NCBI GenBank assembly: GCA_965644295.1
Contig: CBFFRP010000339.1
Span: 1-50,510 of the forward strand
Length of the DNA: 50,510 nt
Reading direction: 5' to 3'
DNA from: Paraphysomonas bandaiensis
Taxonomy: Eukaryota; Protista; Chrysophyceae
Shown here piece after piece: positions 10,620 to 33,213 of the stretch (position 1 is the stretch's first letter; each line of letters starts with the position of its first letter). A model generated the notes under the pieces. That model saw nothing but the letters and a program-made list of their open reading frames with translations. It did no database searches and had not been told where the DNA came from. A program made the translations under genes and the position numbers.

Positions 10620-10898
10620 GTCGTACACACGTTTGTTCATTATTGTGTAGTGTATATTACTGGATTTAATCGCATAGATTTTCACACACTATAAACGCTT
10701 AGTCTGTGCTTTTTTATTTTTCACTATAATGTCTTAATTAGAAACGAATTAAATAGACACCCAATCGCACGCACCATAGCAATGGCACTATGTATTGTAC
10801 AAATGTGACGTAGTGCTGATTAGACTTGGAGATGATCAATCTATAAAAGCACCAGAACATCTGCTGTGGGCGTAGGAAGATCAGTCAGTAATGAATGC

Positions 10899-11383
10899 CT
10901 TATTATTAGCAATAATAGGCGTTTAAGAGCCAGTGCTTAACTCTGGTATCCTTCTATTTAACGCTACAAAAGTTACTTGTGCTTCACCGTAAGCACAAAG
11001 GCTCAACTACTTTCACTCAAAGCAAACGCAGTGATCAAGCAGAATGTTGATATACCTGACATCTGCTGACATCAGGTTTGTGAGTCCTTAAGATGAACAG
11101 CACAAATGCTTGACTGACTTCAGCAGTTCAGCACGCAGCACAAAATCTGAATGTCCTTGAGGTAGGCCCATTCCCGGATGCCTGTTTATTCGTCAAAGCC
11201 CAAAGACGTCTTACACAAGAGACAACTATTAGTGCCCCTGTACCACACAAGCATTACGCTATGAGTAGGCAGAACAATATCTGCTGACTATATATGCGGC
11301 TCACGTTAGTTTACCAAAGAAATATCTTCGGTACTTATCCCCCAGAACACCTCGAAAAGGTGTGACTCCGACTATGTTGAGGG
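10899..11383 (-). mobile_element. Copy A of the ~0.5-kb SINE-like repeat with 5' HDV-like ribozyme signature
   Basis: Colinear similarity to copies at 31478-31970 and 32353-32839. Starts CCCTCAAC and ends TATTGCTAATAATAAG on the minus strand. Weak degenerate TSD (GATCAGTCAGTAA / GATCGGATAGTAA). Confidence 0.85.
11300..11383 (-). ncRNA. Putative HDV-like self-cleaving ribozyme (copy A)
   Basis: CCCUCAAC AUAGUCGGAG UCAC ACC UUUUCGA GGU GUUCUGGGGG AUAAGU ACCGAAGA UAUU UCUUUGGU AAACUAAC GUGA. Assignments: P1 CCCUCA/UGGGGG, P2 UCAC/GUGA, P3 ACC/GGU, 8-bp P4, J4/2 containing CUAA. Confidence 0.65.
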
Positions 11384-11883
11384 ATCGGATAGTAAACTTC
11401 ACCCATACCTAATACTTTGCTGCAGTTTACCCTGCACATTATATAGTATATAGTGATTTTCAAATGTGTTGATTTTCTTCAGTATCAGATATTTTCTCAT
11501 AAATAAAATAATTCTAATCACGAATTTCGACTCAATGATGATGTAGTCGCAGCAGGGGTAATATTCGTCTCGTTCAAAATCGAAGAAAACAATGTGTTTA
11601 ATAATGTGATCCATTTTTTCGCATAGCAGTGCACAGTGTATATAGAAGCGTAATTAATGCATACTACGACACTGCTACAACTAGGGTAACGATGACTCCA
11701 CAGGTATTTGATCAACAAGTGTAGAAGGTAGACACTGATAATTGATCGTGAAAATTACTTACTTATCTGTATTTATCTGCAATTGTTTGCTATGTACTAA
11801 CGTCTAAATATTAGGATTAGAGTATGATAAACCGTTTATATCACCCTTAAATGTAACTGGGAGTGAACGAATTGCATCCCTAC

Positions 11884-12605
11884 CAGAGATAGGGAAATAT
11901 ATATTGTATTGCAATGTATTGTAAAATATATTGATTGGTGGACTGGTCAAATATTCCATCAATATTGTTTCTGTTAAAGTCAATATTATGATAGTCATAT
12001 ATACAGAAAGCTTCTTAACTGTAGGGTAAAGAATATAAGTCCATGTATATAAATCTCCGTTCAGACAGTGATTATTAAAACAATACAGAGGATGACGAAG
12101 CTGAAGTTGGCTATGCGGAAAAATTCTTCAATCGGCTCAAAACTTTAAGAAGCGGAAAGTTGAAATATATAAGTATAGGTGCAGGAGTCATGTAGTATGT
12201 ACTACCAATACATGTGAACTGATTATATCAGTGTTGCATAAAAGTATGCATCCTACTACACTTAATATGCTGTTGTTTCTGAAAGCTAACCGACAGTTGT
12301 GGCCGGATGCAAGCATATTTTTCCGATATGGTGATGATGATGTCACCGATGATGGCTCAGAGGATGAGTATGAGGAAACTTTTAATTAGTTAAGAGAAGT
12401 CGGTTTGATTATCAAGTGACCTTCGACCTTAGACCTCATAATGACAAGTACTAAAAACTAGGGATGTGTTTACTTACTGATTAGTCATACTAATATAAGG
12501 CTATATATTGCAATAGTATTGTAGGGCCGGTTTAAAAAACCCATCAATACTATTGATGGAACGCTATCTAACAATAGAATTGCAATATATTTTTCCCTAT
12601 CCCTG
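11884..12605 (+). mobile_element. Internally deleted non-autonomous hAT DNA transposon (722 bp)
   Basis: Imperfect TIRs CAGAGATAGGGAAATATATATTG / reverse complement CAGGGATAGGGAAAAATATATTG. Perfect 8-bp TSD ATCCCTAC (11876-11883 and 12606-12613). Internal remnant KYRCRSHVVCTTNTCE...KSMHPTTLNMLLFLKANRQLW (~12147-12312) resembles the hAT C-terminal dimerization region. Confidence 0.88.
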
Positions 12606-12870
12606 ATCCCTACATATGTAATCAATGAACGTCGCTATGTTTATGTACGCCCTGGTATGCACTCTGAATCGTGTTCAGCAGTATTTACAAGAAATTAAAA
12701 CTTATTATAATACGGATATTTTATAAGAAAAAATCAAAAGTTTAATGTCTGTAATATCTATTTTACTCTGCATCGGTGCTCGATGATCACCAAATTCATT
12801 ATAGATATGCTTCACTCATGCGACTTTGAACTTGTATATACAAATTTGTCAAATCAGTTAATAATCTGAT

Positions 12871-15800
12871 CTAATTGGTCTTACTAGCAGCAATCATAAT
12901 AGAAAATATCTCCTCCATGTCCATTTTTCGAAATGAATATTTGGTAACAATTCCCCGCAGCGAAAGATTATCTAGTACTAACCAAGCAATAGAAAAAGGC
13001 ACTACGAGTTTCTCAAGAGTAATGCGCACAAGGGTATCGCTATACACAACCACTCTTTCAAGTGCAAGTTCTGATTTCCCGATTTGTTCAGAAAATTCCA
13101 ATAGAAAATCATGAATCGCTGTGGAGTCATATCTCGGGACCAGACTCGGTGCCACGACAACGTCGATCTGATAAAACAAGTCTGACACGCTATCAAAGGC
13201 TGCCATTGCCCCATCAAATTGAAGTCGTCCTCCAAGCAACATTAAGGTTCGACTACAGACTCTCACACATTCATCTAGGCGATGAGATGCAAAAAGCAAA
13301 CCTTGTTCATCCGGCAGGCTACAGAGATACTGAACGATACGCTCAGCAGCGGCAGGATCTACTCCACTGGATGGCTCATCTAGCATCAACATCGATGGAA
13401 AGTTCACATTAGAGAGCAACACTGCCAACTTACGCTTGTTGCCACCACTCAGTGATTTGATTGTGTACGTGAAATACTTTTTGGGCAAAATCGCATACAA
13501 ATCTCCCTCAAATTTCTTCGCTATATCTGGCCTCAAAGATTTACTTCTGAGACCAGAAAAGAGATCGACAGCTTCCTGAACAGTCATGAACTCGAATAAA
13601 CCACCATCTTGCGGTACATATCCCACAGCTCCCGCCCGCCCCAAAAGCCAGTTATCTAGTACACTGTCCATCCCACACAACATAGCACGCCCTTGAACTG
13701 GAATCACTTCACTAGTTGATAGCGCTTTGAAAAGAGTACTCTTTCCTCCGCCGTTGATCCCCATGAGAGCAATTCGCTCCCCGATACTAACATTTACATT
13801 AAGCTCCTTTATGATTGGCCGGGAGGCCCCTCTGTATGAAACACTCAGATTATCACATTGCAAAAGTGGCCGATCATTTCTGCTGCCGGATTTAAAACTT
13901 CTGGCTGCTATGGAAGGCCCCCCTCCCATAGTATATGACTCAGAATCAAGCTGTTCCGATAAGGTGCGACTGAGACGACTACCGCAGTATTCTGCATCTG
14001 AGCTAGAACTAAAACTGCAAGCTTTCTTCATGGAAGATATATCCGTATTCCTTTCAATATCTTTCCCATCAGCGGAAATCACGGTAGGCGGAATCGAGCT
14101 GTACGCCCATGTACTCTGTGAACGAGAGGCCATGTGAATATAGTGCTTAATAGTCTCTTGTATAGAAATATCCGATGGTAATCGAACGCGATTCCGTGTC
14201 CTATCCACACACCAGTGAAACCCATCCGAAACAGAGCACAAACTCCTGTAGCAGAAACAGACAGCTGGATAGTAATACATATCTACAAGTATTGTAATAG
14301 TAAGATAAGCAAACACTTGAATGACCATCGCCACCAATGGGGCGTGCATATCACTCCAACTGGTGCTGCCCCCCTTCGCAAGAATACCAACCGATTTTCC
14401 ATACTGCCGCACGTATCTGGAAAACATTTCAAATAAGCACGATGAGAGAGCGTATGAAGGGGATATCCATGTCAACAAGACTGAAATCTGGACATATGGT
14501 TCTTCACTGTGCAGCGCTAAAAACAACTTCAAAAACAATCCCCCACATATGGTTGTGACCAGAGAAATAAGTTGAGACGATATTTGATCTGTTGAAACAA
14601 CAGCAAAAGCATAATTTGCCGCAACAGATGCATGTGCATATGCCGTGAGTGCAACAAGGAACATTACTCCCGGTAGGGGTTCACTGTCAAAGAAAAAGCT
14701 CTCTATGGGCGCCCCTCCAATCCAAATGGCAGCGTATATACTGAGCAGAGATACCACAAGCATTTGCGAGTCGGCTATGAAATTGGATATCCAATACAGG
14801 GCTGGCGATACACCGCACAAGTGAATCTGCGTTTTTACACCGGTGGACTTACTGGAAGTGATAAACTTCAATATCATGGTCGAAGTCATCAATATATACA
14901 ACACAATCATCAGAGCACCTAGGTATCCACGCTGCATGTACATAGGACTAGATGTGTTGGCATCATCGAACGGGTGACTGAAGAGTCGATATGTTTTTTG
15001 GGCGGACTCCAAATTACATGTACGCGCAGACTCGTTGAAGCGAGAATATTTGGTTCCGTATATAAAAGGTGCGACTTCCTTTAAAAATATTGGAGCGCCA
15101 TGGTCGGTTGTTACATTAGTCATCATTGTGAGATTAGCATGCAGAGATTGATATGACGTAACAATTAATGCAGTACGGTCAGAGAAGCTGTCGTTTCTAG
15201 TGCTATTACGCTCGCTTTCAATGGTAATTTCTATTGATGATAGCTCGTTGCAGAACGCTATTCTATCGGTCCTGTTTATTTCACTCGATGGGATGTGTAC
15301 ATCAAAGAGAGAGGCTGCATATCGGACATGGCTATCGAAATCTATCTCTGTGACATTGTTCAAGCCTATACTAGAGTTGCAAACGACGCTCTGTAAGGCA
15401 TAAAACGCATCGTACACATCCGTCACTGGTAGTTTTAAGGCATCATCAGTGATTCGTACAGTTGATTGAAGCCATTGTGGAACTGTATCATCGACAACGA
15501 AGGATGCCCATCTATTCTTCGTTCCATGGTTAAAATACTCTTCATAAAGTGTGGAAAACATATCATCAGAGCTGACAGATCCCATCCAAGTCAAAGAGTC
15601 TCCTAAAAACTCTTTTAATTGTCCATAACCCTTATACATCTTTCTCGACTTCTCAATATCCACAAGATGTACACCAGAGTGCGCCTGGTTACTTAAATCG
15701 GAGCCAGAGAATCCTATACCAGAATTTACACTGCTGACATTTGTGCCAGTGCCAACAAGTATCTCTCCAACATCCCCAAGGGTAGAGCTCGTCAATTCCA

Positions 15801-18800
15801 ACAACGGATATTCAACATCACTGCAGAAAAACACTAACACTAAAACGATGAGGAAAGGTAACAGTATGTGAGACAATAAAAATTGAGAAAAGTGAGCACG
15901 AATTTCAATCATGCGCAAATTCATCAACAAACCCATTCTCTTGAAACTCTGACCTAAGAATGATTCAGATATCGCACGGTGAATCGAAAACGACTGTGAT
16001 CCCTCTGAACTACCTCCTTTCGTCTCCGCCTCATCGAAACTACATGAACTAGCAACAGAGTACTTTCGCTCTGTGATATCATACATTCTACTCAGCGAGC
16101 TGTACGCATTAGGAGATACGACACTCCAATCAATAAGGCCATGATTCTCGAGTGTCACAACAAAGCGCCGAAACTCTTCCACGCTATCTTGCGTAAACAA
16201 TGGAATGTACCACAAGTGCAACCCAACCTCCTTGTTCATTGCAGCCTCTGGTGAATAGTTGAAGACTTCTCTTCCTCCTATCTCGCGGCAGTGTGGGAAG
16301 CGGCTAACGAACATTTCTCGCACAGCTGGATTGCATGTAGAGAACTCCACATGGTTCGCAGAGCCGTCAACACGAGTCCCTAGACTTTTCTTTTCTTCAT
16401 TTGAATGACCGTAATATCTATCAGTCTTACTTTCGCTGCTAGAGTGCAAATCAGACAGTGCACCATTGAAAGTTAAACTGTGTTCATTTAGAAACCAAAC
16501 TCGATCACTTATGACTTCTACATCGTCAATATGATGTGTCGATATTAAGACCGCACATCCACTTTTACGTGCAAGAATGCCCTTCCGTACCAATTCTCGA
16601 GTGTATGAATCACACCCGGAAGTCGGTTCATCTAGTAGGAGTACTTTTGGATTTCCCAGACATGCCATTGCAAGTGACAGACGGCGCTTCATACCCCCAG
16701 ATAAAGCGTGGGCGTGTTTATCTGCATGCTCCACTAAATCTAATTGAGAAAGCAGCAGAGATATCTCTCCACTGGACTCTCCTAAACTCTCACTAGTCGT
16801 CATACGTCGTTGTTTTGATATCGCCGCCCGGTCCACACCCAGCAAATACGAAAACATTTCAAGATGCTCGCGGACAGTCAAATAATCGTACAGAGAGTCC
16901 GTTTGGGCGCACCATCCGAGCAAACGTCTGTGCTTCCGCATTCTTCTCGGTGAAGGTCCTTTCCTGTCCCGAGCATACATCACTGTACCAGTGTAGTTCG
17001 AGTCAAATCCACCCAATATTCGCATTAAAGTTGTTTTCCCTGGAATAGACATTACGGATGATTCGAAATCCAAAAACTAAAGCAACTTACCTGCGCCATT
17101 ACTGCCAAGAAGGGTGGTCACAGAGCCAACCAACAGGTCTGCATCGACATCCTTAAGCACCTCCACAGGGGATCCATCAAATAGCTCGTATGACTTGCAC
17201 AGTTTGGACACCATAAGTCCGATAGAGTCACTATCTCGTCTTGGCAATTGCGCAAATGTACTACTTTCTTTATGCTGATAGTTATCTGCTACTGGGGTTG
17301 AAGTACTCAATGCACTGTTCTGTGAGCGCAGCCAGTCGAAGGCGTAGAACCCAATGCGATTTAAATGAAATAGTCCCTTAGGATGCACTTTTATATCCGT
17401 CGCGCCGTAAGACGCATTCGTACACGCAGCAGATGACAAACGAAGTTTGGAGGGATCAACATACAACTTTGGAGCTACACGATACTCTTTAGATGACACT
17501 ATGAGAGCAATGACAAAGTATATTACGAAGTCGATGCCAAGTATAAACGTATACACCCAAATAGGAGCACCAGATACAACTGCAAGTGTGTTCCATCCCA
17601 GTGGAGAATGTAAAGCTTCCATAGAACACAGAAGCCGTGCGACCATCACAATTGCGCTCGGAGGGAACAAGCACAGAAGTATTTCCATTGGCAACGAACG
17701 TTGCACATCATATGCCTGGAATGTAGAATTAAAGTCAGTAGGAACACAACAAAATAAAATCTACATACCAGATCATAATAAAGCATTCCTGGGAGCATTG
17801 TTAGAAATACCACAGTAGGGACGACAATAACAGCGGCTTCTGCCCTTTTCACGGCTGTGCTTATAATAATGGCGACAGGCCCTAAAATTAAATCAAAACT
17901 ACATCAAAGAAAAATATGACAAAGCACAAGCAATTAACCTAGGGCGAATCCAAACAGTAGGAAGTTTATTGCTGGTACTATCGGGTCAGTATAGTCCAGT
18001 ATGAGGCAGAAGAAAATATATGCAGCTATCGACGGAAGCAAAGCAAGGACACATGCACTTGTCACCCATGCCATGGTGCAAGACCGAATGTTGATCCCAG
18101 GTAGAGAAAACAAAGAGTCGAATTGCCCGCCTGTTGCGTCTCGACAGAAATATCCGGCAACGAGTGCTGGTGGAAGAGAAAAGTACACAACTAGAACGGT
18201 TGCTATCATAACAGCCAGTTTGTGCCAAAACACATCCATGGTATATCCACGAGTAGGATACGCTCTGTCATAAACAGGAACTTGCAACATTGGACGTGGA
18301 GCTCGTAGCTGCATAATATAGTAAGAGTGAGATCAGATCACAGACTTTTGGATCATCACCTGTGAAGATATATTATACACACTGCTGTACAGATCATCAG
18401 TTGTATTGGCACGTAGAATTCCCGCTGCCACTAGTTTTGAAAGAGTAGCAGGTTCAAGGGGGTCGAGTCTTTCCGAAACAAAAGATGATTCCGAAAACGC
18501 ATGCGAATTCAGCAGTGGACCACCCATTCCTAATGAACTGAAGAAGTTTTGAATCTCAAACTGCATTGTCAAGAACCCTGACGTAAAATATAACAGCTGC
18601 CCGGCCTGCGCACGAGAAACCCGACTTCCTTGCTTTCTTGGAGACCAGCTGAGGCAACGTATACGGTCATACGCCAGATCTAACTATAGACACAGACACT
18701 TACATAGTGTTTCTGGAGTCTGGAATACTCGACGGGTGAAATCGGAGAGTCACAGACGGTCCTACTAATTCTAATTCTTCTCTCGATAGTGAACTTACAT

Positions 18801-19655
18801 TTTGTGGACACACATTGTGCTTGTTAACTATTTCTAAAAGTACCCAGACTTTATCACAGCAATGTCCTGCCCTGGTTGCGCGGTACATAGACCTGTAAAT
18901 TCGTACATCCATATCCTACAATGTATCACAAGATAGAAACCATACACTGCAAAGTCTACAGACCTTTATTATCCTTGAGGTTTTCTTCATGTGTGAAATA
19001 AAACTCCGAGTCCAGCAGTTGTCGGGACTCACACGTATCTGAAGATCACGGACTTGCAAAAATGATCCGAACTGACCTCGTAGAAAAGATGACTTCATGA
19101 TTTCGTCTTTCATATTCGAGTTCAGATTTTGATTAACGAAATCTGATGTTTTTACATAATCGTCAAGACCAAACAATGGAAGACCATTCATCATTATGCT
19201 ACTGAGTAGACGGGCAAGATTTTTAGTATTCACAGGGTCGTTGTGTTTGACAGGGTCTAATAAACGAAAAAGGATACTACTCGGTGAAACCCCACCTATA
19301 CTGTCATAGTAGTAGTCTGAGTCTTCATCTGTATTGGGGTAGTACGGTTTGCATTTAGTTAGCGCTGCATGAGGATGATATCTGTGAGTTTTTACATCAA
19401 TACCACTACACGTGATATCAAAGGATAACTTCGAGAATGTCTGCATATCCATAAGAGAATGCAAGTAAAACACTATGAGCGTACCTTGTCTGATGAATAA
19501 ACAGAACTCATTCGTCCTGATGATAACCACATAGCATACAATACAGAGAAGAGCACCAGAGAGCTCATAATAAAGAAACGTCTATTTAAATGCTTCCTGT
19601 GGATAGATGTCAAATTATAATACGTCAGAGCTTTCACCACCGCAAGAGTGGACAT
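12871..19655 (-). CDS. ABC transporter subfamily A, full-size, multi-exon
   Basis: NBD1: GSNGAG|KTT (split by a 51-nt intron at 17040-17090), LSGGMKRRL, LLLDEPTSG. NBD2: GINGGGKST, LSGGNKRKL, LMLDEPSSG. Two TM regions with large exocytoplasmic loops. 5' exons pieced together from successive ORFs; start ATG 19655 is tentative. Confidence 0.9.
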
Positions 19656-20055
19656 GGCTAATTCTCTCACTGTTCCAATCAATCTCTGTTTCTTATAATA
19701 CCATCAATATAAACAATTAATGCATATAGTGTATGTGTATCTATATATATATGTAGGAGTCCATATGTATGTATAGATAGGCATGTAATCAATTCACTTC
19801 ATCTTTTAAAAGAAGTCGAAGTCATGGATGTGTTTCTTCCAATGATCTCCAGTACCAAGAGAATACAATGTGTATTCTACAGTATTCTATCATGTACTGC
19901 TGTATTATATACAACAGTACACTTGTGGATAGACGTATGTAGCAGTACACAATGAATAGGGACAAAAGCACATACAATCATATATCTAGATATCTCCATT
20001 TACCACTATATATATGCAACTTGTGTTAAGTTACAATAACAAGGAGTTAAGATAC

Positions 20056-20410
20056 TCCCAAATAGAGATAAACTGAGCCCTTTTGTGGTGTTTTGAGGGA
20101 TAAATACTGTAGATAATGTTTTGTAGACAAGATATACTGTTCCCCCCACTCATAGTCTAACGCATGTGCATACAAGGAAGAGAAATATATATTTTTTGTA
20201 CAGAGTTCTTTGACTTTCAGGATATTTGGGGCTTTAGGCCGCCTGGTGAAAGTAGGTATCCGGAATGAGTTGGTCATACTGCCTTTATAGATTAGGAAAA
20301 AGCATGTGATTTGGCTGAAGCACACAACACAACTCGTTGAAAGTCCCCACAGCAAAGTAAACTTTTATGTTGAGTTGAGCACTTACCGCTGTATGCAATA
20401 GTAAATAGGT
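20056..20410 (+). mobile_element. Copy B (strongly decayed) of the SINE-like repeat
   Basis: Blocks TTGTGGTGTTTTGAGGGATAAATAC, TGTTCCCCCACTCATAG and GGTATCCGGAATG match the other copies in order. The J4/2-P2 segment is missing. 3' end approximate. Confidence 0.65.
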
Positions 20411-20874
20411 GAATATTAAAGTATGTTCAGTGTCGCGCGAGCTGTTAAATTGGTTGCGACAACTTACTAACTAGGATAGGATGGTCCCCACTAAAATGTA
20501 GAGATTTTGCTGTGGTGATATACGATTATTGGATATAGTATTCTACAGCTAGGGTATGCCCATCATGTACTGGAAAAAGGTGTATAAAAATCAAATTTTG
20601 CAGTAGAGGTGGGTAGCATGTAGCAAAAGAAATTCATACATAGTAAACAATAAAGAGAAAGAGTAGCAATAGGATTAGAGACTAAATATATTAAAAGCTC
20701 AGATTTTAAGTTCTAGTAAAATGGTACCAGATATTCACAGGAATATTGCTGTATAAGGTGATTACATCCTCTATAAAGTATTTCGAAATATGAACAGTAC
20801 CTGCCAGTTCGGTGAGTACATATCATCTCTATGAACTATATCAGTACAGGGTAAATATGTTGGGGAAAATATAG

Positions 20875-22154
20875 TCATGGTAAAAATGTCGTTTTGCTGG
20901 AAGTATAGGGACTGGGTATATTGCGAATAGAGTTCGCATCAGTGTTTGATTGTTTGAAAAGAGATTTCTTAGTGCGCACATATCCTGCGGTAGCCGGACG
21001 GGACCGTATATTCGGCGTGCTTTGACGTCCATGTGGAACACTATCCACTGTCCTTCGCTGGAGTCGTGTATCTGATCTGCTCATGCGCATCGTGGATACA
21101 ATGCTTTTGTTGTTCGTGTCTCTAAAGCCAGACTTCGATGGCAGAAAAGGGGTAGGGGCAGTGCATCCATCCGCGTCTTCACCTCGCTTCAAGCAGCACG
21201 ACCACGCCATCTGCCAGTCAGTGAGCTCCGACCGGCGCTATTTTAGAGATCAATATATTAATAAACAGCAGAGTTGGTAGCGCACAAGATCACTCACGTA
21301 TACACCAGTGTGATACTTCTGCGACTGGCTAATTTTCTGCAAAGTAGCTGTTTCAGTTGGAGCTGGTGAGAAGATAGAAGGTGTCGTACAACCGGAGAGT
21401 TTGCGATGCCCTCCACTTCGAGGCATAAAGCGTTCGTGATCGTCCTTTAGTTTCCGTACAATCGCTGTGGCACGCTCAACCTGTCAGAAACTGTAAGAAT
21501 GAGGTGTACATATATTCATGATACAAATGCTAAGGTTCAGACATGTACCTTTCGCTTCAGTTCTAGTCCCTCACTCTTCACACTGACAAGCTTTTCGGAC
21601 AGGCCTTTCTGTCTCTCTGATGCTTGGGTACGAATCAGCTCGTGTTCCAAAAGTGCATGTTCTCGCTTCCTCTCAGCTTCTATCCCCTGGAGAATAGATA
21701 GGCTAGAACTAAGATCCTTGAGCGACCGTTGCATATCATCCACTTCCTGTTGAGATACAGATACCTGAACGGACATGAATTTAAGCCTTCGTTTGTTGCA
21801 CTCTATAAACCTTAGTGAGTAATTCCGCCAGCTGCTGCGTGTTCTTCTGACATCCTTTTTTCGAACATGCTGTGGTCGAATTCCTGTTTTCATCCGCAGT
21901 ACCTATCATAGAGTCATGTGTGCGTACACCTGAACCTATTTGCTTTTTCTCTTCAGAACCTCTCAAATTCTGCATCACAACACATCTTAAATGGGAGAGC
22001 ATAGACACAACGGCCTCACCAGCGCAAAAGGGATCGAAGAGGGATCAAGGTGTGATATTCTATCCACAGGTGACTTTCGCCATTCTTCATTGTATACTTC
22101 TGAATCTAATCGAGAAAATGTCTCCCATGCTGTCTTACTATCAGCAAGTGACAT
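20875..22154 (-). CDS. Hypothetical coiled-coil protein, multi-exon
   Basis: Consecutive minus-strand ORF pieces with splice-like junctions (e.g. ...LKRK|gtacatg, tctgacag|GTTGAGCG). Heptad-like segment VSQQEVDDMQRSLKDLSSSL...ELKRKVERATAIVRKLKDD. No family recognised; exon structure uncertain. Confidence 0.5.
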
Positions 22155-22782
22155 GAGGACAACGAATACACTATATGAACTCAATAACAGGACTTAACAC
22201 AATCCATTAGATCAGAAAGCAACACTAGAGAGAATGAATGCTTCAACTAATGGGGTATTCTATGAGTTATTCGTAGTTGGAGTTCTGATTCCTTCAACAA
22301 TACTCCTCAACCACTTTATGTTACAGTTTCCATACCACAATCCCCAATACCATACTACACACACACGCTATACATATACAATATTACTGTGTATACACTG
22401 CATTGTATTGTGCGATGTACCCATACATATACAATAAAACGAACTACAGGAATATTCCTCAGCTTTTTCAGGAGCATACTTTACTGATACTTTTATAGTC
22501 AAAACCCTCAGGATTTAGAAGAAAATATGTGATTTTATAAAAATATTGCAGGGAAAGTATGAAGTATTGTGCGATTCCAGTACACCGTACAGCTCTGCAG
22601 ATTAACCAGCAAGTATTTTTCTAGATGGAATATATCAATATACAGCACTACAGTATAGCTATACTCTGCTGTATAGCCATATCTCATATGCGCCTGTACA
22701 TACACAGCAGTGGCATATACCATAATTACTTCCAATTTAACAACAGACACTGTACAGTGATAATTAGAGAGTGAATCTCACC

Positions 22783-23211
22783 ATGTCTTATCTATTGCCT
22801 CATCTAAGATCCGGTTGGGCTGTGGACCAAGCCATTATTAATGAAGAAGACAGGGTTGTGGTGATACGCTTTGGACATGACTGGGATACAACATGCATGC
22901 AGATGGACGAAATCCTCTGTAATATTGCTGAAGATGTTAAAAACTTTGCTGTTATTTATTGTGTTGATATCAGTGAGGTGCCAGACTTTAATACGATGTA
23001 TGAGTTGTATGACCCATGCACGGTTATGTTTTTCTTCAGAAACAAGCACATTATGATTGACTTGGGAACAGGAAATAACAATAAAATTAATTGGGCATTT
23101 AACAACAAACAGGAAATGATAGATATTATAGAGACCGTATTTCGTGGAGCTCGAAAAGGTCGGGGGCTTGTAATATCTCCAAAGGACTACTCCACGAAAT
23201 ACAGATATTAG
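22783..23211 (+). CDS. TXNL4A: Spliceosomal U5 snRNP thioredoxin-like protein Dim1 (142 aa), intronless
   Basis: Highly conserved sequence MSYLLPHL...VDQAI...RFGHDWD...FFFRNKHIMIDLGTGNNNKINW...RGARKGRGLVISPKDYSTKYRY. Confidence 0.98.
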   Translation: MSYLLPHLRSGWAVDQAIINEEDRVVVIRFGHDWDTTCMQMDEILCNIAEDVKNFAVIYCVDISEVPDFNTMYELYDPCTVMFFFRNKHIMIDLGTGNNNKINWAFNNKQEMIDIIETVFRGARKGRGLVISPKDYSTKYRY

Positions 23212-23736
23212 TACATGTTCATATTGGGGACTCATATGTTTTCCCATGTTCCAGGTGCAGATCAAGCAGTACTTTATTCATGCATTTTTAATAAGAAACT
23301 TTTGAACTCCTACTTATGAGGTTTTGCACCATATTGCCGTCGCGATCGAAGTATGTTATTAGTATTTAACTTCCTTTTCGGCTTTTCGGAGTAGGGGTGT
23401 TTGTTGGGCAAGTCTTTGTAACTTGCATGTATACTTTTTATACTTAATTACGTATAAACCCATGTACAAAGGCTATTGAGGACTGAGCTTCTAGAGGCTC
23501 TGTATAGTGTGTAGTCCTAATGTACTAATCTTAGAAGAGAATCTAGTAACTGTGCTCAGTGCTTAATGCTTTGATGGGTACCTGCTCCCAGTGTCCACTC
23601 ATGGCATTATCACAGCCACATATTGGCTTGTAGTAAAATACCTTGTAGTTAATATATATGATGACTCTATTAAACGAAAATAACAGGTATATCAGTATTT
23701 CATTTGTTAAAATGGCATAAATTTTATATTGAGGTA

Positions 23737-26055
23737 CTATGCATTGCTTCCTCTAACTCTTTTTTTCCTACGACCACTACCACCACGCTCACTTCTACCC
23801 CGCTTTGGCCCATTGCTCTGGACATTGCTACGAGGGGCATATATATTATTCTGACTGCGACTACTGTTTTTTTCACGAAAACTTTCCGCTTTCTTGCGAG
23901 CCTGCCGAGAACATTATTAAAAAATACTGTGTTGTATCGTAGAAAAACACGCACCTCTTTGCTTTTTCGCTTATAATCGATAGAGAGTTTCTCGCGATTC
24001 TTTTTCCAAGCATCGACAATCTCACCCTCGGACCTGAGAGCATGTCAGTATCGACCACACATAGTGGATGCAAATAACTTACATATCCCTATAGAAAGAC
24101 GCAGCAGTACTAAACACGCATACTAGTGACGGGAATTCAATTTTTCTTTCCTCTTCTACATGTGACTCTGTTGCACCTGCACTCAAGGCGCCATCACATT
24201 CCATTTCCGTATGATCACTCGCACCGAAGGAGAAAGAGAAACCATCGACTGCTGCTTCGGTGGTCGTGTCTTTGTTCTGTTCAGGGGCGCTGTCGAAAAA
24301 ACCGAATACCATCCCCGTTTTTTTAACATCCTGGGCAGACTCTCCTTCTCGAACATCAATACCGAGCTTTTCAGCCTCCAGGTATAAGCTGTCCTCCTTT
24401 AGACGCCCTGCATCTTCAGATCGCGCTACCATATCGTTCAGGGTTCCATCATCCCCCCAGGTGAATCCTCCCTATACATCATCCGAATCAGGCCTTGTGC
24501 TTATAAACGCGTATTACATACGTAATTCCAAGTGCACAATATGTCACAGCACAGCAGTAGCAAAATACGAACCTGTCTATGGAATATTCCCTTGAGCTTG
24601 TCGACATCGGCAAATTCCTTTGTCGTATCTGTGTCTCTTCTATCAGTTTCAGCTTCCTCGCTCAACCTTTTAGCCTCGTCTCTCCGACGAATTTCCTCTT
24701 CACTCAACTCCAATGCGGCAGTGGTTTGAGGAGCAGCAGAAGGGTCAAACCTAGGTGCTCCAAATGCCGCTCCAGAGCTGGCCCGAATATCCGCCTTCCG
24801 CCTCTCCGCAGCCTTAACAGGGTCTTGTTTCGCTGCAGCAGCTGTGTCTCCGTCGGTAGCCACCAGCATAGCCGCTATTTTACGTTGACGCTCACGCTCT
24901 GCATTCAGCGCATCATCTTCAAGTTCCCCTTCTCCCACGCAAGCCTCGTTGTCACTATCTGAAAGGTCTTCATACCTACCACTCTCCGTCACGACCTCCA
25001 TTTGTTCATGATTTACAGCGTGTGAGCCTGGAGCAGGGACTGCCGAAGTAAACTCCGCTACCCCATCTTCAGGTGCTGGAGTAAGTGAACTAGTGTGTCC
25101 TGAGCTCGGTGGGGCTGTGCCGCAACCGCAGGATTCTCTAGCATTTGCATCAGCGGCCTCTCGTGGAGGAAGAGAGGCTATGGCCCCAAACCCGACACGC
25201 TTGCCGCCCCCTTTGGGTGCAGCGGGCTCTGTTACAGTTGCAGAAGGAACGTCTGCGGCAGAAACAGGAGTAGAAGTTTCAGTGCTAGCATCTGCCTGTG
25301 TAACTGATTTCACAGGCTCAACCTTGCTAGCCGCTTGGAGAGGTGCAGTAGAAAGGACCGGCTGTGGGAGCCCGTTATCGGTGAACACAATCCGACGTCC
25401 ACACGGGAGGATGGCTTTGGGTCCAGTACTACTATTACCTCCCCCTCTTGCGCACACGTAAACATGCTCGTTTTTAAGTCGGCGTATCTTCCACACCCGC
25501 TCACTCAGTACTTCGGCAGGCACTTTTCGAGGGGCACATGGAATTTCATGAGTTGTAACTTCAGCGGTTTCTTTCTTCTCGCGCTCAAGTCGTTCTTTAT
25601 AAAACTCCTTAGCAACATCAACCCTATCAGTAAATTAATTTATTCATCAAATTATAGGAACCATAAAAATTATAGACCTTATTTTCGACCCTTTCCAGTG
25701 GCATCCATTGAAAGTGCGCACACCTAAATGAAACCTGTAAGGATGGCCATGGCATGACACAATGCGACAAACATTTCTTTAGCGTATCCTGGTCGGCTTG
25801 AACTTGAACCACAGCAAAAGCTCGCCTTAATCCTAATTTTATGTTAGTTATGTATTTATACTCATAAATATGCTCACCTGTTGCAGTTTTGCCGGGAATG
25901 TACACGTGTAACACAGGCGCTATTTTAGAAAACAACTGCTTGACATCCTCTTCTGTGGAGACAGCAGGCAGTTCTCCAACTATAGAACCTCTATATTACG
26001 TACAACTTCAAAAGAAAGCAACGTTACAAGTACCATATATACGCCTCTCTTCCAT
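23737..26055 (-). CDS. NOL8-like nucleolar RRM protein, multi-exon
   Basis: Spliced N-terminal RRM (RIYVGEL...EEDVKQLF...RAFAVV...FNGCHWKGSKIRVDVAKEFYKERLERE), acidic low-complexity middle, and C-terminal AWKKNREKLSIDYKRKSKEARKK motif with a basic tail. Confidence 0.75.
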
Positions 26056-26347
26056 ATTGACAGGACCGCTCTAATGCAGTCTGTCAGAGTCTGGTTCAAG
26101 GCCTATTCGAAATGAATCACCTTAATTAGTACAACTTGTACAAGGATTGAGCTAAAAATACTGATGTGTTGAATAATATAAGTTGAATATAATGCAATAG
26201 CCTAAGCGCAGTGCTGTCCAATGCATTCATTGGCAATATACGTATACGTATGATTCCTCCAGTATATAGTATGCTATGTATAGTATACAGCAGAGTTCAT
26301 GGTATTGCACGATCATTGGCTGTCGTAAAAAAAAGCAAAAAAAATGC

Positions 26348-26356
26348 AAAAAAAAA
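26348..26356 (-). terminator. Pol III oligo-T terminator of tRNA-Sec
   Basis: Run of 9 T on the minus strand beginning 2 nt after the discriminator base. Confidence 0.85.
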
Positions 26357-26358
26357 CT

Positions 26359-26445
26359 CGCAGGCGAGAGAGAATCGAACTCCTAAGCAGTTAAGCTTCC
26401 ATGGATTTGAAATCCATGCCCCATACCAATGAGGGTCACTCCTGC
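26359..26445 (-). tRNA. tRNA-Sec (anticodon UCA), 87 nt
   Basis: GCAGGAGTGAC CCTCAT TGGT ATGGGG CATGGA TTTCAAA TCCATG GAAGCTTAACTGCTTA GGAG TTCGATT CTCT CTCGCCTGC G. Shows a 6-bp D stem with 4-nt loop, 6-bp anticodon stem with TCA, long variable arm, 4-bp T stem and G discriminator, i.e. the eukaryotic tRNA-Sec fold. Confidence 0.95.
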
Positions 26446-26466
26446 ACTCTAAGGGAGGGTACACTA

Positions 26467-26475
26467 TTTTATGTA
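26467..26475 (-). promoter_or_regulatory. Possible TATA-like element upstream of tRNA-Sec
   Basis: TACATAAAA at about -30 to -22. tRNA-Sec genes commonly depend on upstream promoter elements, but the AT-rich context weakens the call. Confidence 0.35.
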
Positions 26476-26865
26476 ATAAAAATGATACATAGTACACGCA
26501 GTGTGTATGTATAATCCTTTTTAAACCTGAAAACCTGTATTTCGTAGTTAATCCAACACTGTATTCTACATGAACATATACAAATATATGGTTTCCACAT
26601 GCCCACAACTAGGAATTCTGGGAAATTTGTCAGACAATATTACCAATTTCTTAGCTTGTTACTGTATGTGGTCATATATCGTACCATACATGGACTGTAT
26701 GGCACAAGACATATACAACAGTATATATACATGTACATGTACATATAGAGTACCACATTCACACATTCATTATAATCTTTCATATTAATTGCGTTCAACG
26801 CATAAACTAGTTATTAATTTACTTCCTATATGTACTAACTATAGTCTCATCCGTAGAATACAGTT

Positions 26866-29800
26866 ATGTCTGCTTTTGGAGGGTTTAAACCTGTAGGAGG
26901 TAACACTGGTTTCTCTCCAAATACATCAAGAAATACTTCAGCATTTGGTTCAAATCAAACAAATTCTACATTCGGAGGTAACAAACCTTCAACTGCATTT
27001 GGTGGGGGTTCTACAGGAAATCAATTTGGTGGAACATCATCAAATTTCGGTTTGTAAATTGTTTTATGTGTAAATGTATATATAATGTATAACAGGTGGC
27101 TTTGGAGCTTCTTCAGGGGCAAGTGGGGGCACAGGTTTTGGTACAACAAACCAATTCGGTGCGGGAAACACACAGAATCAAGGCGGGGGTATGTTTGGTG
27201 GTAGTCCTGGAAAATCTTCCTTTGGATCTGGAGCCTCTACCCCCTTTGGAAATGCAAGTGCTCAGAGCAGTGGATTTTTGTCCTCGTCCAATAGTAACAC
27301 TACTTTTATGGGTGGGGGAGGTAATACGGGCGGTAGTCCTTTTGGCAACAAATCTGGAGTTGGAGGTTCCGCTTTTGGGAATACACAATCGCAGGTTGGA
27401 ACTATAGTATTACGGCTATATTCTTTCTGATAATTTTGTTGCTCACAGACTGGATTCAGCAGTGGATTTGGACAGCAGCAAAATTCTTCCGTGGGTAGTG
27501 GTAACCCCCCTTATGTGGTCACAACCGTGAGTTGGTATACGTGTACTCTGATTACTCTAACATGGTTGGTATTTATTGTAGGTATCTGAAAGTAATGTGC
27601 GCGGTGCGGCGAAGAATAGATTTCATTCAATTACTGCGATGCCAGCGTACCAGAACAAGAGCTTCGAGGAGATTCGTTTAGAGGACTATACTGGCAAGCC
27701 AGGTTCGTGATGTATTTTGTATCACGATATGCGAGGGTATACTTACGTATATTTTTGAACAATTAGCCTCCGGAGCACCGACAGGAGGGGGTACAGGTTT
27801 TGGTACAACTAACCAATTCGGTGCGGGAAACACACAGAATCAAGGCGGGGGTATGTTTGGTGGTAGTCCTGGAAAATCTTCCTTTGGATCTGGAGCCTCT
27901 ACCCCCTTCGGAAATGCAAGTGCTCAGAGCAGTGGATTTTTGTCCTCGTCCAATAGTAACACTACTTTTATGGGTGGGGGAGGTAATACGGGCGGTAGTC
28001 CTTTTGGCAACAAATCTGGAGTTGGAGGTTCCGCTTTTGGGAATACACAATCGCAGGTTGGAACTATAGTATTACGGCTATATTCTTTCTGATAATTTTG
28101 TTGCTCACAGACTGGATTCAGCAGTGGATTTGGACAGCAGCAAAATTCTTCCGTGGGTAGTGGTAACCCCCCTTATGTGGTCACAACGGTGAGTTGGTAT
28201 ATGTGTACTCTGATTACTCTAACATGGTTGGTATTTATTGTAGGTATCTGAAAGTAATGTGCGCGGTGCGGCGAAGAATAGATTTCATTCAATTACTGCG
28301 ATGCCAGCGTACCAGAACAAGAGCTTCGAGGAGATTCGTTTAGAGGACTATACTGGCAAGCCAGGTTCGTGATGTATTATATTTATAGGTGCATATAATG
28401 TTGATGACAATGACAGCGTCTGGAGGTACACCTGCCACAGCTGCAGGGGGGTTCGGGGCCTCTTCGGGAACTGCTTTTGGTGGGGGGGGCTTCGGTGCAT
28501 CCCCTGGAAATAGTGGAACGGGTTCCTTCGCAGCAAAACCAGCCACTGGTTTTGGTAGTAGTGGATTCGGCACTGGAACTACAGGTGGATTTGGTAATCA
28601 AAGCCAAACACAGGGAGGTTTTGGACAAACCCAAGGGGGGTTCGGCACCTCTGGTGGGGGATTTGGTGGAGGCGTCACCGGCGGATTTGGAACGCAGAAT
28701 ACAGGTGGATTTGGAGCGTCCAATCGAACAGGCGGTTTTGGGGGAAACAATAATACAGGAAGCGGAGGGTTTGGAGGTTTCAGTCAATCTACGACAGGTT
28801 TTGGTACTCAAAATGCAAATGCAAGCGGTGGGTTCGGCACTCAGAACACAGGTGGTGGGTTCGGCGCTCAGAATTCAGGCGGTGGGTTCGGTACTCAAAA
28901 TACAGGCGGTGGATTTGGGGCTAAACCTACTAGCGGTGGATTTGGGACTCAAAATGCAGGCGGTGGTGGGTTTGGTACCGGTGGGTTTGGTACTCAGAAT
29001 ACAGGCGGTGGGTTCGGCGGTCAGAATACAGGCGGCGGTGGGTTTGGTACTCAAAATACAGGCGGTGGATTTGGGGCTAAATCTACTAGCGGTGGATTTG
29101 GTACTCAAAGTCTAGGCGGTGGATTTGGTACTCAAAATACAGGCAGTGGGTTTGGTACTCAAAATGCAGGCGGTGGGTTTGGTACTCAAAACACAGGCGG
29201 TGGATTCGGCACTCAGAATACCGGCGGCGGTGGGTTTGGTACTCAAAGTACAGGCGGTGGGTTTGGTACTCAAAGTACAGGCGGTGGGTTTGGTACTCAA
29301 AATACAGGCGGTGGTTTTGGTACTCAAAGTGCAGGCGGTGGATTTGGCACTCAAAGTCTAGGCGGTGGGTTCGGAGCAAAGTCTTCAAGTGGTGGTTTCG
29401 GGTCTTCTACTGGAGCGGGGGGATTTGGAACCGGTGGTGGTTTCGGCACTGGTGGTGGTGGTTTTGGTTCCACTGCAGCCTCAACATCTCAACAGCAGAC
29501 TACCACCAGTGGATTTGGGAGTGGATCTGGGTTTGGAAATAAGCAAGCGACTGCTGGGTTTGGTACAAGTCCGAGTAAATCGACAACTGGGGGCTTTGGT
29601 ACCGGCGGTTTTGGTTCAGCTGGGGGCGGCTTCGGTACAAATGGGACAAGTGGTGGGGGATTTGGTGGACAGAACCAAGGGGCTGGAGGATTTGGGGCAA
29701 AACCGTCCAGTAGTGGTTTTGGGACGTCTACTGGACTGGGAGGGTTTGGAACGGGTAGTGGTTTTGGAACTTTAGGTGGTTTTGGCTCCTCTGCAGCCAA

Positions 29801-31076
29801 GACAGGGCTAGGGGGAGGTTCTGGGATGGGGACTAGTGGCGTCGGGTCTGTTTCGTTTGGACAGCAGCAAACTATGGCTGGCGTTGGGGGAGGGAATCAA
29901 CAAGTCCCACTGCCTGCTATGGACTCAGAACTCAAGTTGAAATCAGACTTGTTGCTACTGAAAAAAGAACTACTGGAAATTAATATGGGTGTTAGCAACG
30001 TAGCGAAAACACTCGCTACTTCTTCAGCCGTGTCGGAGCAGAGCTACGTTTCTCCGCGCCACTATAACCCGCGATCATCTGCGCACGTTCAGCCTCGTGC
30101 GACCGTGGGAATGGTCCAGCCGAGCTCCACTCAACAGAAGGTCTACTCATCAGAAAATCAAGCGATTACTGATAAACCCTCTGCCTCCAAAAGTGCCTCG
30201 TCTGTCAGGGAGCCTACGTTGCTCGCGGTTGATCCCAAGACCCGAGCAGCTGACTTAGTTGCTAGTTTACCTGTTGTGGGTGTAGATTCATCTGGTGATA
30301 GAGACAAGATAGATAGCGATCATACTCCGAAAAGATGTAATGTATCAACTCCACAGGAGACGAAGAGGTCTCCTGTGTATTCGCCTGATCATGATGCCAC
30401 TGGTTTGACACCAGCAGCTGCTGCTGACTCGCCGTACCTTCTTTCTGTTGAAAAGCCTTCTGCGAAATCCAACGGAGATGAATCGGTGTCGGTGGATGAA
30501 TCACAACGCAGTTCGTCAGCAGAGAGCGCACGAAGTGGTTACAATGGCTTAGAGTCGGAATCCACGTGTCTGTCACCTGTTGTGTCGCCGAAACCAATTT
30601 TCTTCGATACACCTCTTCAAAAGCTTTGTACTGGCCGTACCATGGATATTGTACCCACCTTAAGTAAGCCAGGACACCATTGCAAACCAGCCATTCGTGT
30701 TCTTCAAGACATGACGTCGGAGGAGCTCGAGAGCGTGAAGTGTTTTTGCATTTTCTCTCCAGGTGTTGGGCGAATTGAATGGGAAGATGAAGTTGACCTG
30801 CGTGGCTTGAATTTGGATGATTTAGTGACCATCGAAAAGGGGGCTGTATATGTGTATGAAGGCATATCGCACGCTGAGAAACCAAATGAAGGTGAAGGTC
30901 TGAATAAGCCCGCCATCGTCACTCTCTATGGTATATATCCCAAGCCAGATGCGTCACAACAAACTTACAAAGATTTTCCTAATAAGTTGCGTAGAAAGTG
31001 CGAAAAGAACGGGTCCGAATTCATAGGGTACGATATAACAAGCGGTGAATGGACGTTTCGCGTGCGTAATTTCTAA
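26866..31076 (+). CDS. NUP98: Nup98-family FG nucleoporin (GGFG repeats, two GLEBS motifs, C-terminal autoproteolytic-like/NPC-targeting domain), multi-exon
   Basis: GLEBS FHSITAMPAYQNKSFEEIRLEDY occurs twice, followed by long GGGFGTQNT repeats. C-terminal domain: VGRIEW...VDLRGLNLDDLVTI...VYVY...GEGLNKPAIVTL...FIGYD...GEWTFRVRNF*. Confidence 0.93.
27129..28378 (+). repeat. Intragenic tandem duplication (period 662 bp, ~590 bp nearly identical, exons plus introns) within NUP98
   Basis: Identical ORF-track peptides at 27191 and 27853; intron sequences are duplicated with only a few substitutions. Confidence 0.95.
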
Positions 31077-31477
31077 GTTAGTAACGGATGTACGCAAAGC
31101 CTTGGGCGTGAATATTTACACAACCAACAGTGACTAGTACTGCGTGAATTATGTGAATCTTGAGCATTTAGGGGTTTCAAGATGTAGACTTTTAGTTAGT
31201 TCATTCAAGATATTTTTCATACACTAATAATGTCGATTACATATGCAATATAAACCACATATATGGCCCCGTTAAAACTGGATCTTATGATGTAATATGC
31301 ATTCATAACGACACATTGGGAAAGTTTATGAGTCAATTCACTACGTCGATCAGTAGTGGCGAACATACTAGACATATACTTAGTAGCAGAATGCACGAAA
31401 ATATATATTGTTTATTTATATCCGTAATATTTGTTGAGTTCTACAATATGAGAGCTGTAGTTATAATAAGGTATTCA

Positions 31478-31561
31478 CCCTCAACAAAGTCGGAATCGCA
31501 CCTTCTCGTGGTGCTATGGGGAATAAGTACCGGAGAGATTTCTACGGGATACTTACGTGAG
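31478..31561 (+). ncRNA. Putative HDV-like ribozyme (copy C, P1 partly disrupted)
   Basis: P2 UCGC/GUGA, P3 ACC-UUCUCGU-GGU, P4 CCGGAGAG..UUCUACGG; J4/2 GAUACUUAC retains the candidate catalytic C. Confidence 0.55.
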
Positions 31562-31970
31562 CCGCATATATAGTCAGCAGATATCAGATATTGTTCTGTC
31601 CACTCATAGCCTAATGTTTGTGTGGTGCAAAGGAAACTTGTGTAGACGTCTTTGGGCCTTGTCGAATAAACAGTCATTCGGGACAGGGCCCACCTCAAGG
31701 GAATCCCGGGGATTGGGCTGCCTGCCGAAGTCAAGCATCCTGGATGTTCACCGTAAGAACTCGAAAAGCCGGTAGTCAGCAGTTGCCAGGTACATCAACG
31801 TTTGCTTTCTCACTGCCTTTGCTTTGTGATAGAGCGAAAGTAGTTGTACCTTGGTGCTTGTGATGACGAACAAACAGCTTTCGCAGCGCTAAGTAGTAGG
31901 ATATCAGAGTTAATTACTAGTTAGTCAAATTACAATGCCAAATTAGTCCTGAAGTATTGCTAAAAGTAAG
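31478..31970 (+). mobile_element. Copy C of the SINE-like repeat
   Basis: Starts CCCTCAACAAAGTCGG and ends TATTGCTAAAAGTAAG. Flanked by TAAGGTATTCA (31467-31477) and TAAGATATTCA (31967-31977), a 10/11 TSD-like match overlapping the tail. Confidence 0.88.
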
Positions 31971-32352
31971 ATATTCACTACTAAACGTATAATAAACTGA
32001 ATTGAGAGTTTATAAATAGTAAACTGTTTGGTGATAAACAATCAGAGAATAATGAGCTTATTCTTTGTTGGGTTTATGCTATATGTCGTTATGACTTATA
32101 TGCATAGCGTTTTATAACCATTATTCTATCTAGTTGAACGTAATACTATCTATACGACGAATAGCATTTAAATCAGGGCCTGGTAACCGTTAATGGTAAG
32201 GGCCTGCTTGCTTCATATATTGAAGCACAATCTAATATTGTTGAGAGGCTTTTTAGTCGTGCAAAGTTGATTACGACACCAGAGCGTAGAAACATGAATC
32301 CATATCGTCTAATATCGTTGCTATTCCTACGAGCCAATTACATATTGAAAGT

Positions 32353-32839
32353 CTTATTATTAGCAATATATAGGCGTTAAAAACCTGCACCAACTTAGTA
32401 GCTAGATGAATGCTAGACAAACTAGAGTTAGACCTCTACCCCTGTAACTAATCAGTACACACTTTTTTATCCTACAATTTAACGCTACGAAAGCTGCTTG
32501 TGCGTCGCCGCAAGCACCAAGGTGCGACCACTTCCGCTCTGAGTTCTTAAGGTGAACATCCCGGATGCTTGACTTCAGCAGGCAGCCCAATACCCCGGTT
32601 ACCCTTGAGGTGGGCCCATTCCCGGATGCCTGTTTATTCGTCAGGGCCCAAAGACGTCTACACAAGTGACACATATTAGTGTCCCTTGTACCACACAAGC
32701 ATTCGGCTATGAGTGGGCAGAACAATATCTGATATTTGCTGACTATGTTTGCGGCTCACATTAGTTTCCCAGAGAGAATATCTCCGGTACTTATCCCCCA
32801 GACAACCACGAGAAGGTGCGAGTTCGACTTTGTTGAGGG
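32353..32839 (-). mobile_element. Copy D of the SINE-like repeat, with ~19-bp TSD
   Basis: Flanks GAGCCAATTACATATTGAA (32331-32349) and GAGCCAATTACACGTTGAA (32840-32858) are 17/19 identical. Same termini as copies A and C. Confidence 0.9.
32755..32839 (-). ncRNA. Putative HDV-like ribozyme (copy D, best preserved)
   Basis: CCCUCAACA AAGUCGAA CUCGC ACC UUCUCGU GGU UGUCUGGGGG AUAAGUA CCGGAGA UAUUC UCUCUGG GAAACUAAU GUGAG. P1 with one bulge, 5-bp P2, P3 with 7-nt L3, 7-bp P4, CUAA in J4/2. Confidence 0.7.
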
Positions 32840-33213
32840 GAGCCAATTACACGTTGAAGCCCTGCAAGAAGATCCTGATGTTCCTATGGAGGGCGAGAAG
32901 TAGTTACAATTCGTAGTCTGCTATTAAACTAAAAATTAGTAATTAAGGGAGCACCACACTATCTATTATGAGCGGTATGATCTACTTTAAGTTAGTAGGT
33001 ATTAATGGTCATTAATGAGCCATTAATGGCCATTATAATTGCCGGGACATTTTTCATAAATGCCATTATAATTACCGGTAACTAAACGCACGATCTGCTA
33101 CTCCAGCTAGTATGTGCACCAGGACCAGGATTATGACAACTGCATGGGGTGTGATTCATCCCTAAAAGCGTAAAGATGACGTGAATTTTATTAGGAAATA
33201 TCAAATATTATTG

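Follow-up and report, generated by a model that had tools for sequence, protein, structure and literature searches.

The 50,510-nucleotide (nt) stretch analysed here, called the window, is positions 1 to 50,510 of contig CBFFRP010000339.1 in the Paraphysomonas bandaiensis assembly GCA_965644295.1, and it contains four copies (A to D) of a dispersed non-coding repeat whose first ~88 nt can be drawn as an HDV-like ribozyme (HDV, hepatitis delta virus). The four copies were aligned, and their ends were re-measured with a consensus of 19 short copies (Table 1). Copies A, C and D, each ~0.5 kb long, are colinear and share a sharp 5' end at CCCTCAAC, with unrelated sequence upstream of it; a model built from the family (model R1) found A, D and C in the window at E ~1e-21. 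The initial annotation had described all four copies as colinear. This was right for A, C and D, but copy B is far more diverged and is a decayed relative of a 1.19-kb subfamily, which it resembles at positions 24-61, 105-153 and 977-1147 of the latter, tail region included. Copy D, previously begun at 32353, starts at 32343 by our measurement, which is backed by a perfect 12-bp target-site duplication (TSD).

Copies A, C and D lie behind genes in the sense direction. Copy A is downstream of an open reading frame (ORF) for an ATP-binding cassette (ABC) transporter in the same orientation (and also ~600 nt past the SRR1 ORF on the other strand), copy C is ~400 nt 3' of a Nup98-type ORF in the same orientation, and copy D is downstream of a leucine-rich repeat (LRR) ORF, again in the same orientation. 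This placement fits transcription by read-through, although with only three copies in a compact genome it is no proof. The window also holds a selenocysteine tRNA gene and a reverse transcriptase (RT) of a retroelement, which are listed with the repeat copies and with their tails related to a long interspersed nuclear element (LINE).

Table 1. Positions of the repeat copies, their parts, flanking duplications and two further features in the window (UTR, untranslated region)
Feature	Position	Strand	Basis
Copy A, old short-form element, ~492-497 nt	10887/10892-11383	-	Alignment to short consensus; R1 109 bits
Copy A, head	11292-11383	-	Consensus alignment
Copy A, LINE-type tail	~10887-11012	-	Consensus alignment
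Copy B, heavily decayed, internally deleted	20056 to ~20500 (3' limit approximate)	+	R1 23.8 bits, E = 0.008
Copy C, old short-form element, ~500 nt	31478-31977/31982	+	Consensus alignment, R1
Copy C, head	31478-31569	+	Consensus alignment
Copy C, tail	~31831-31982	+	Consensus alignment
Copy D, short-form element, 497 nt, 93-nt-head subfamily	32343-32839	-	Consensus alignment, R1
Copy D, head	32747-32839	-	Consensus and LINE alignment
Copy D, full LINE 3' UTR-type tail	32343-32540	-	Consensus and LINE alignment
Copy D TSD, 3'-side copy, perfect 12 bp, TGTAATTGGCTC on element strand	32331-32342	.	Flank comparison
Copy D TSD, 5'-side copy, 12 bp	32840-32851	.	Flank comparison
Selenocysteine tRNA gene, anticodon TCA	26359-26445	-	Rfam 69.6 bits; ARAGORN
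Retroelement region with a 1,714-residue open frame	1-~6000	-	
Reverse transcriptase within that open frame	1454-1915	-	

The family is very abundant in the genome examined (62.6 Mb, 669 contigs), with thousands of candidate copies, as the initial annotation had supposed. A first-look BLAST search with copy C as query returned 2,602 candidates, all 150 scored genome matches of the head covariance model had E < 2e-20, and a strict pattern of the head core matched exactly at 366 places while the reversed pattern matched 0 times in 62 Mb. Two forms were distinguished: a short form of ~0.5 kb, whose sampled copies are 75-83% identical to copy C and which contains a subfamily whose 93-nt heads are in many cases identical, and a young, non-coding long form of 1.19-1.21 kb, whose copies are 95-100% identical to one another and have the first ~350-370 nt in common with the short form. 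Every copy examined starts at the same C. The long subfamily (L009:1501-2687, L033, L034, L036 and others) falls into two length classes, ~1,187 and ~1,212-1,216 nt; several of its copies end early or are internally deleted (L038, L046-L048, L050), and its ~800-nt middle has no match among the other sequences compared.

The insertion footprint was read from 14 young long copies. Twelve of them are flanked by perfect TSDs of 11, 12, 12, 12, 13, 14, 14, 14, 15, 15, 15 and 18 bp and the remaining two by TSDs with a single mismatch; among the 12 perfect cases are 8 whose duplication overlaps the last 1-5 nt of the ...CAATA end of the element. Variable TSD length together with terminal microhomology indicates target-primed reverse transcription by a LINE with an apurinic/apyrimidinic endonuclease (APE), not a transposase or integrase, and supports the classification of the element as a LINE-dependent non-autonomous retroposon. 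The same mechanism had been proposed from TSDs of 17/19 and 10/11 in the window; the mechanism holds, but those duplications were not reproduced. The TSD of copy A is weak (~9/12), and the supposed TSD of copy C is mostly 5' flank that resembles the element's own tail. Copy C directly adjoins the tail-like sequence of another copy in direct orientation (31455-31477), and the long copy at L009 adjoins such a tail in inverted orientation (L009:1440-1490). Adjacencies of this kind suggest that the 3'-end microhomology makes the tails of the element favoured insertion targets.

The 3' end of the short form comes from a resident LINE. Over its positions 300-497, copy D is 85% identical to ~190 nt of sequence beginning ~47 nt past the stop codon of the LINE that contig C440 carries; a LINE copy on C433, 98% identical to the former, matches the tail of copy D equally, a second LINE family (C143) matches it at 81%, and copies A and C carry the same LINE-type tail with internal deletions. 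The short form ends in ~190 nt that are the 3' UTR of a young giant LINE, and the long 1.19-kb subfamily has only the terminal ~25-nt box in common with these LINEs. The LINE ORF (2,942 residues seen of ~3,021) contains a SET domain, an Exo_endo_phos endonuclease and an RVT_1 domain (SET-APE-RT LINE), and the LINE has typical 5'-truncated copies at 98% identity.

The head of the element is absent from this LINE. A search of a protein collection gave a 428-residue protein that is 98% identical to the LINE N-terminus and reaches 74 residues upstream of the query, and the ATG of this protein lies at position 104 of its contig. The first 600 nt of that contig matched the genome at no fewer than 40 places with 97-100% identity, nearly all of them 99-100%, and homology began at position 30-35 of the LINE 5' contig in most places and at 2-24 in a few; the 5' leader of the LINE is only ~70 nt long. 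The SET-APE-RT LINE is present in many full-length copies (at least 40), and their 5' boundaries scatter over a few bases, unlike the exact start of the SINE-like element (SINE, short interspersed nuclear element). The leader has none of the head core motifs and model R1, run with filters off, found no match there, so that across at least 40 LINE 5' ends the head is not common to the autonomous LINE and its supposed derivatives. Therefore, the element is probably a chimera and not an internally deleted LINE: its tail is LINE-derived, and its head and body (~89-300) are without match to the LINE DNA compared. Pattern searches of the genome revealed no autonomous carrier of the head and no second head family, the matches with another L3 or with canonical spacing being mutants of the same family. 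A search of the genome with PF14529 found nothing, and no length-compatible homologues of the N-terminal 500 residues of the LINE were found. Of the autonomous partner with the same head and tail that the initial annotation had proposed to look for, we thus found the tail and not the head. Its reading of the repeat as a non-autonomous retroposon like RIME or SIDER stands as to LINE dependence and the L1Tc-type head, and fails in that the LINE supplying the tail lacks this head.

When characterizing the head, numbered from the first C, we could draw all helices over ~88 nt in the nested double-pseudoknot order of HDV-like ribozymes (P1, P2, P3, L3, P3', P1', P4, J4/2, P2'), as had been proposed for the first ~85 nt. 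P1 is formed by nt 1-6 with 40-45, P2 by 14-16 and 18-22 with 80-87, P3 by 23-25 with 33-35 (L3 = UUUUCGU) and P4 by 53-59 with 64-70, and J4/2 reads GAAACUAAC; the centroid fold of the head recovers P1, P3 and P4. The putative catalytic cytosine is unpaired in J4/2 and followed by N-A-A (GGAAAC-UAA before P2'), which is exact in 366 copies and also present in L1Tc. The invariant core, CACC-N4-CGTGGTG, AGTAC and GGAA(A/G)CTAA with C at +1, was found in the same 366 copies and in the L1Tc oligonucleotide. Moreover, nt 1-6, counted from a start that the TSDs set independently, form 6/6 pairs with the six bases whose last lies exactly 3 nt ahead of AGTAC, the register of the class, and subfamily-level differences in the head lie only in the distal part of P4 and keep it paired. 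In the published L1Tc layout, CCCTGGC (P1) is followed by P2, CACC TCAA CGTGGTG, a 7-nt P1 3' strand, 3 nt and AGTAC (PMC3185411, PMC4748587, PMC1874656), and then by the P4 hairpin, GGAAGCTAA, 2 nt and P2' (primers in PMC3185411 and PMC4748587; 77-nt oligonucleotide in PMC1874656). The head has every landmark of that 77-nt oligonucleotide, so the L1Tc signature given in the initial annotation was accurate.

The copies in the window have lost parts of this core. Copy A reads CGAGGTG for CGTGGTG and GTAAAC for GGAAAC, copy C reads GGATACTTA for GGAAACTAA, and copy D, which is also internally deleted for consensus positions ~293-362, reads GGTT for GGTG. Since A, C and D are each substituted at invariant core positions, an effect on present-day neighbouring transcripts is unlikely.

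We then looked for the ribozyme class beyond this genome with a pattern in which only P3 and the common single-stranded core are fixed. The class pattern matched 24 metagenome contigs and four places on one genome record (OZ255840.1); a first metagenome pattern, specific to the present repeat family, and a scan of viral contigs found nothing. With one probable chance match set aside, the matches represent at least eight sequence-distinct lineages, with the P1 5' strands CTGCTTC, CCCTAGC, CCCCATC, CCCTCCC, GGCGAC, GGAGAC, GCCTTGC and TCCCA, each with a matching complement. In most lineages this complement begins exactly at the G that follows GGT and stops 3 nt short of AGTAC (in the GGCGAC and GGAGAC lineages, 4 nt short), and the two strands of P2 match as complements in a constant register that runs from the base preceding CACC to 2 nt past CTAA.

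Cross-lineage statistics were calculated on alignment A3 (loci L068-L095), of which six rows come from one lineage. All 7 pairs of P2 changed on both sides, and P2 was 92.4% paired versus 66.9% in shuffled alignments (0/500), with slid controls at 50% or below. The full topology (P2, four outer P1 pairs and four P4 pairs) was 93.6% paired versus 69.5% shuffled (0/500; slid controls <=50%), and 14 of its 18 pairs changed on both sides. RNAalifold recovered P2, P3 and P4 de novo, and the P4 hairpins of 5 out of 10 tested folded clearly better than their shuffles. Covariation for the HDV-like fold is therefore present across the lineages that share the core.

The record OZ255840.1 contains three copies of a ~0.8-kb non-coding repeat that start exactly at the G of GGCGAC, end in (AATC)n and are flanked by TSDs of 14-15 bp abutting the predicted cleavage site. 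This arrangement lends independent support to the idea that the predicted cut site is the start of the element. The 8-kb stretches taken from this record (L092-L095), labelled as a metagenome-assembled genome (MAG) of Lapillicoccus sp., have only 42-53% G+C and bear eukaryote-style ribozyme-headed retroposons, and, as actinobacterial sequence, this part of the record looks either mis-binned or mislabelled. A further head lineage at L092:7620-7750 (P1 GGAGAC/GTCTCC) has, ~30 nt past P2, a short hairpin together with a poly(A) run and may be a minimal ribozyme-plus-tail element. The commonest metagenome lineage, with P1 CTGCTTC (L071, L073, L074, L077, L078, L082, L083, L086, L088-L090), always has a degenerate A-rich tract upstream, and its P4 covaries between variants (GATC/GATC versus GTTC/GTTC). 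No reverse transcriptase was present among the ORFs downstream of the metagenome heads.

Taken together, these observations make it probable that the repeat is a LINE-mobilised, non-coding SINE-like retroposon that joins a variant of the L1Tc/Pr77-type HDV-like ribozyme, as head, to the tail of a LINE. Such an element would consist of three parts: an 88-nt ribozyme-type head, a body and a 3' tail, the last being the ~190-nt 3' UTR of the SET-APE-RT LINE in the short form and only the terminal ~25-nt box in the 1.19-kb form. We infer that host promoters upstream of the copies probably drive their transcription by read-through, that the RNA cleaves itself and that the LINE protein recognises the tail. 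The head would fold into a double pseudoknot (P1, P2, P3, P4, J4/2 GGAAAC*UAA) and cut immediately 5' of C1, giving the exact 5' end of all copies. The LINE protein would then bind the common tail and insert the RNA by target-primed reverse transcription, with priming by TA/ATA microhomology to the ...CAATA end yielding TSDs of 11-18 bp. That master copies self-cleave is likely.

Several points weigh against a cutting head. The P1 3' strand has 10 nt (GTTCTGGGGG), 3 more than in L1Tc and in all metagenome members, so that P1 consists either of 6 contiguous pairs with 4 unpaired nt after P3 or of 8 pairs with a 2-nt bulge; a 7-bp P1 directly after P3, ending 3 nt before AGTAC as in the class, is not present, with only the 3'-end register kept, and the 8-pair alternative includes the class-conserved C-G next to P3. 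P1.1 is weak (at best A46-U32 plus U47.G31), and in P2, which begins 1 nt (not 2) past CTAA, a 1-nt bulge is required. The head matched no HDV family of Rfam, at the gathering score or at a lax E <= 10, in the comparison with HDV-type models that the initial annotation had suggested; a canonical class member from the metagenomes matched RF02682 end to end, but only weakly (22.9 bits, E = 1.1). The covariation that had been reported among the window copies was not confirmed: 26 heads of the family had 88.9% paired cells versus 89.1% when shuffled, with changes that resemble neutral CpG decay, and in a conservation profile the head was no better conserved than the body. Consequently, this genome alone cannot test the fold, and we infer constraint only from the other lineages. 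There, the P1 5' starts of the metagenome members were picked for their complementarity, and discrimination was weak in a position-free P1 control in which G-U pairs were allowed (diagonal 6.7 versus off-diagonal 5.7 of 7). In addition, the sole RNA data are contigs from RNA libraries of polyA marine metatranscriptomes (two studies), which contain the element but, being assembled, cannot show 5' ends, and for which no pile-up of molecule ends was reported.

The geometry of P1, the weak P1.1, the lack of an Rfam match and the ordinary conservation of the head would suit an L1Tc-type relic that has lost the ability to cut, or never had it in this lineage, with the start at C1 set by an internal promoter as in Pr77 and the LINE-tailed retroposon otherwise unchanged; Pr77 itself is documented as both promoter and ribozyme (PMC3383444). 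We consider this unlikely. The landmarks of the catalytic core are all intact in 366 copies, all four helices can form, and the first base as defined by the TSDs is the predicted cut site in the class register. Moreover, changes at the level of master copies occur only in P4 with pairing preserved, and there is no known reason for a trypanosome RNA polymerase II promoter element to work in a stramenopile.

An ordinary SINE transcribed by RNA polymerase III (pol III), with a head derived from tRNA, 7SL or 5S RNA that resembles a ribozyme by chance, is very improbable. The element is indeed short, non-coding and abundant, with variable-length TSDs and a 3' end in common with a resident LINE, as in ordinary SINEs, but ARAGORN and Rfam detected no tRNA, 7SL or 5S in any repeat copy (their sole window match was the selenocysteine tRNA), in agreement with the lack of tRNA A/B boxes noted earlier, and the head fits a pattern of ~24 specified bases in common with L1Tc of which the reverse never occurs. 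As the head is without pol III derivation, we call the element SINE-like and not a classical SINE. A solo long terminal repeat (LTR), miniature inverted-repeat transposable element (MITE) or other DNA-transposon fragment, for which nothing speaks beyond a dispersed short repeat, can practically be dismissed, as the TSDs are of variable length (11-18 bp) and share microhomology with the 3' end, the two ends differ and show no evident terminal inverted repeats in their sequences, and a LINE 3' UTR forms the 3' end.

If the head of the SINE-like element cuts, an RNA-processing module occupies the place where SINEs normally carry a promoter, in thousands of copies in a stramenopile-type marine protist, and the range of the L1Tc-type ribozyme extends well beyond trypanosomatids. 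It would also mean that retroposons can combine head and tail modules of different origin, as so far seen only in rare Drosophila R2/R1 hybrids, and active sense-oriented copies 3' of genes could cleave read-through transcripts. Further, we tentatively suggest that the Pr77/L1Tc-type core might be a widespread cassette for 5' processing, able to pass between retroposon lineages, and not a hallmark of trypanosomatids, carried here only by non-autonomous elements and replacing the promoter, so that a highly successful SINE would owe its 5' end to host read-through and self-cleavage and its 3' end to an unrelated giant LINE. Alignment A3 offers a ready, covariation-supported basis for a dedicated model of this ribozyme subclass.

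In the library searched, no paper linked HDV-like ribozymes with stramenopiles, and the nearest relatives of the head are the L1Tc/Pr77 elements of trypanosomatids (L1Tc, NARTc, ingi, RIME, SIDER). Their ribozyme has the same invariant core with C at +1, CCCT at nt 1-4, a P1 that ends 3 nt before AGTAC and a J4/2 that reads C-U-A-A; it stands at nt 1 of the retroposon and also heads non-autonomous elements (PMC3185411, PMC4035085). The L1Tc ribozyme cleaves in vitro at C1 (PMC3185411, PMC4035085) and is reported with a single P1.1 pair (PMC3185411). By analogy, the element would work like the ribozyme-headed non-autonomous NARTc, RIME and SIDER. However, the P1 3' strand has 10 nt here versus 7, L3 is TTTTCGT versus TCAACGT, J1/2 is longer, and P2 begins 1 nt and not 2 past CTAA, with a bulge. 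Moreover, the partners L1Tc/NARTc and ingi/RIME share their head, whereas the autonomous partner here lacks it, and the host here is a marine protist. Because the LINE is without the head and the P1 geometry differs, the element is strictly outside the ingi/RIME system.

Plant retrozymes (hammerheads) and Schistosoma elements (hammerhead/twister variants) likewise process the RNA of a non-autonomous retroelement with a small ribozyme (PMC4918200, PMC8501958), but the ribozyme class is another one, and retrozymes also follow another mechanism, with circular RNA intermediates and LTR-type partners. Closest in architecture are the R2/R1 hybrid SIDEs of Drosophila, in which the HDV-like ribozyme of R2 heads the 3' end of R1, a different LINE whose machinery and TSD type are used (Eickbush and Eickbush 2012, PMC3414825). 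The SIDEs are rare and specific to sites in ribosomal DNA (rDNA), with the R2 donor in the same genome, whereas the present element is dispersed in thousands of copies, has a ~200-nt body without LINE match and has no autonomous head carrier at the pattern level. The element is a further example of an already known strategy.

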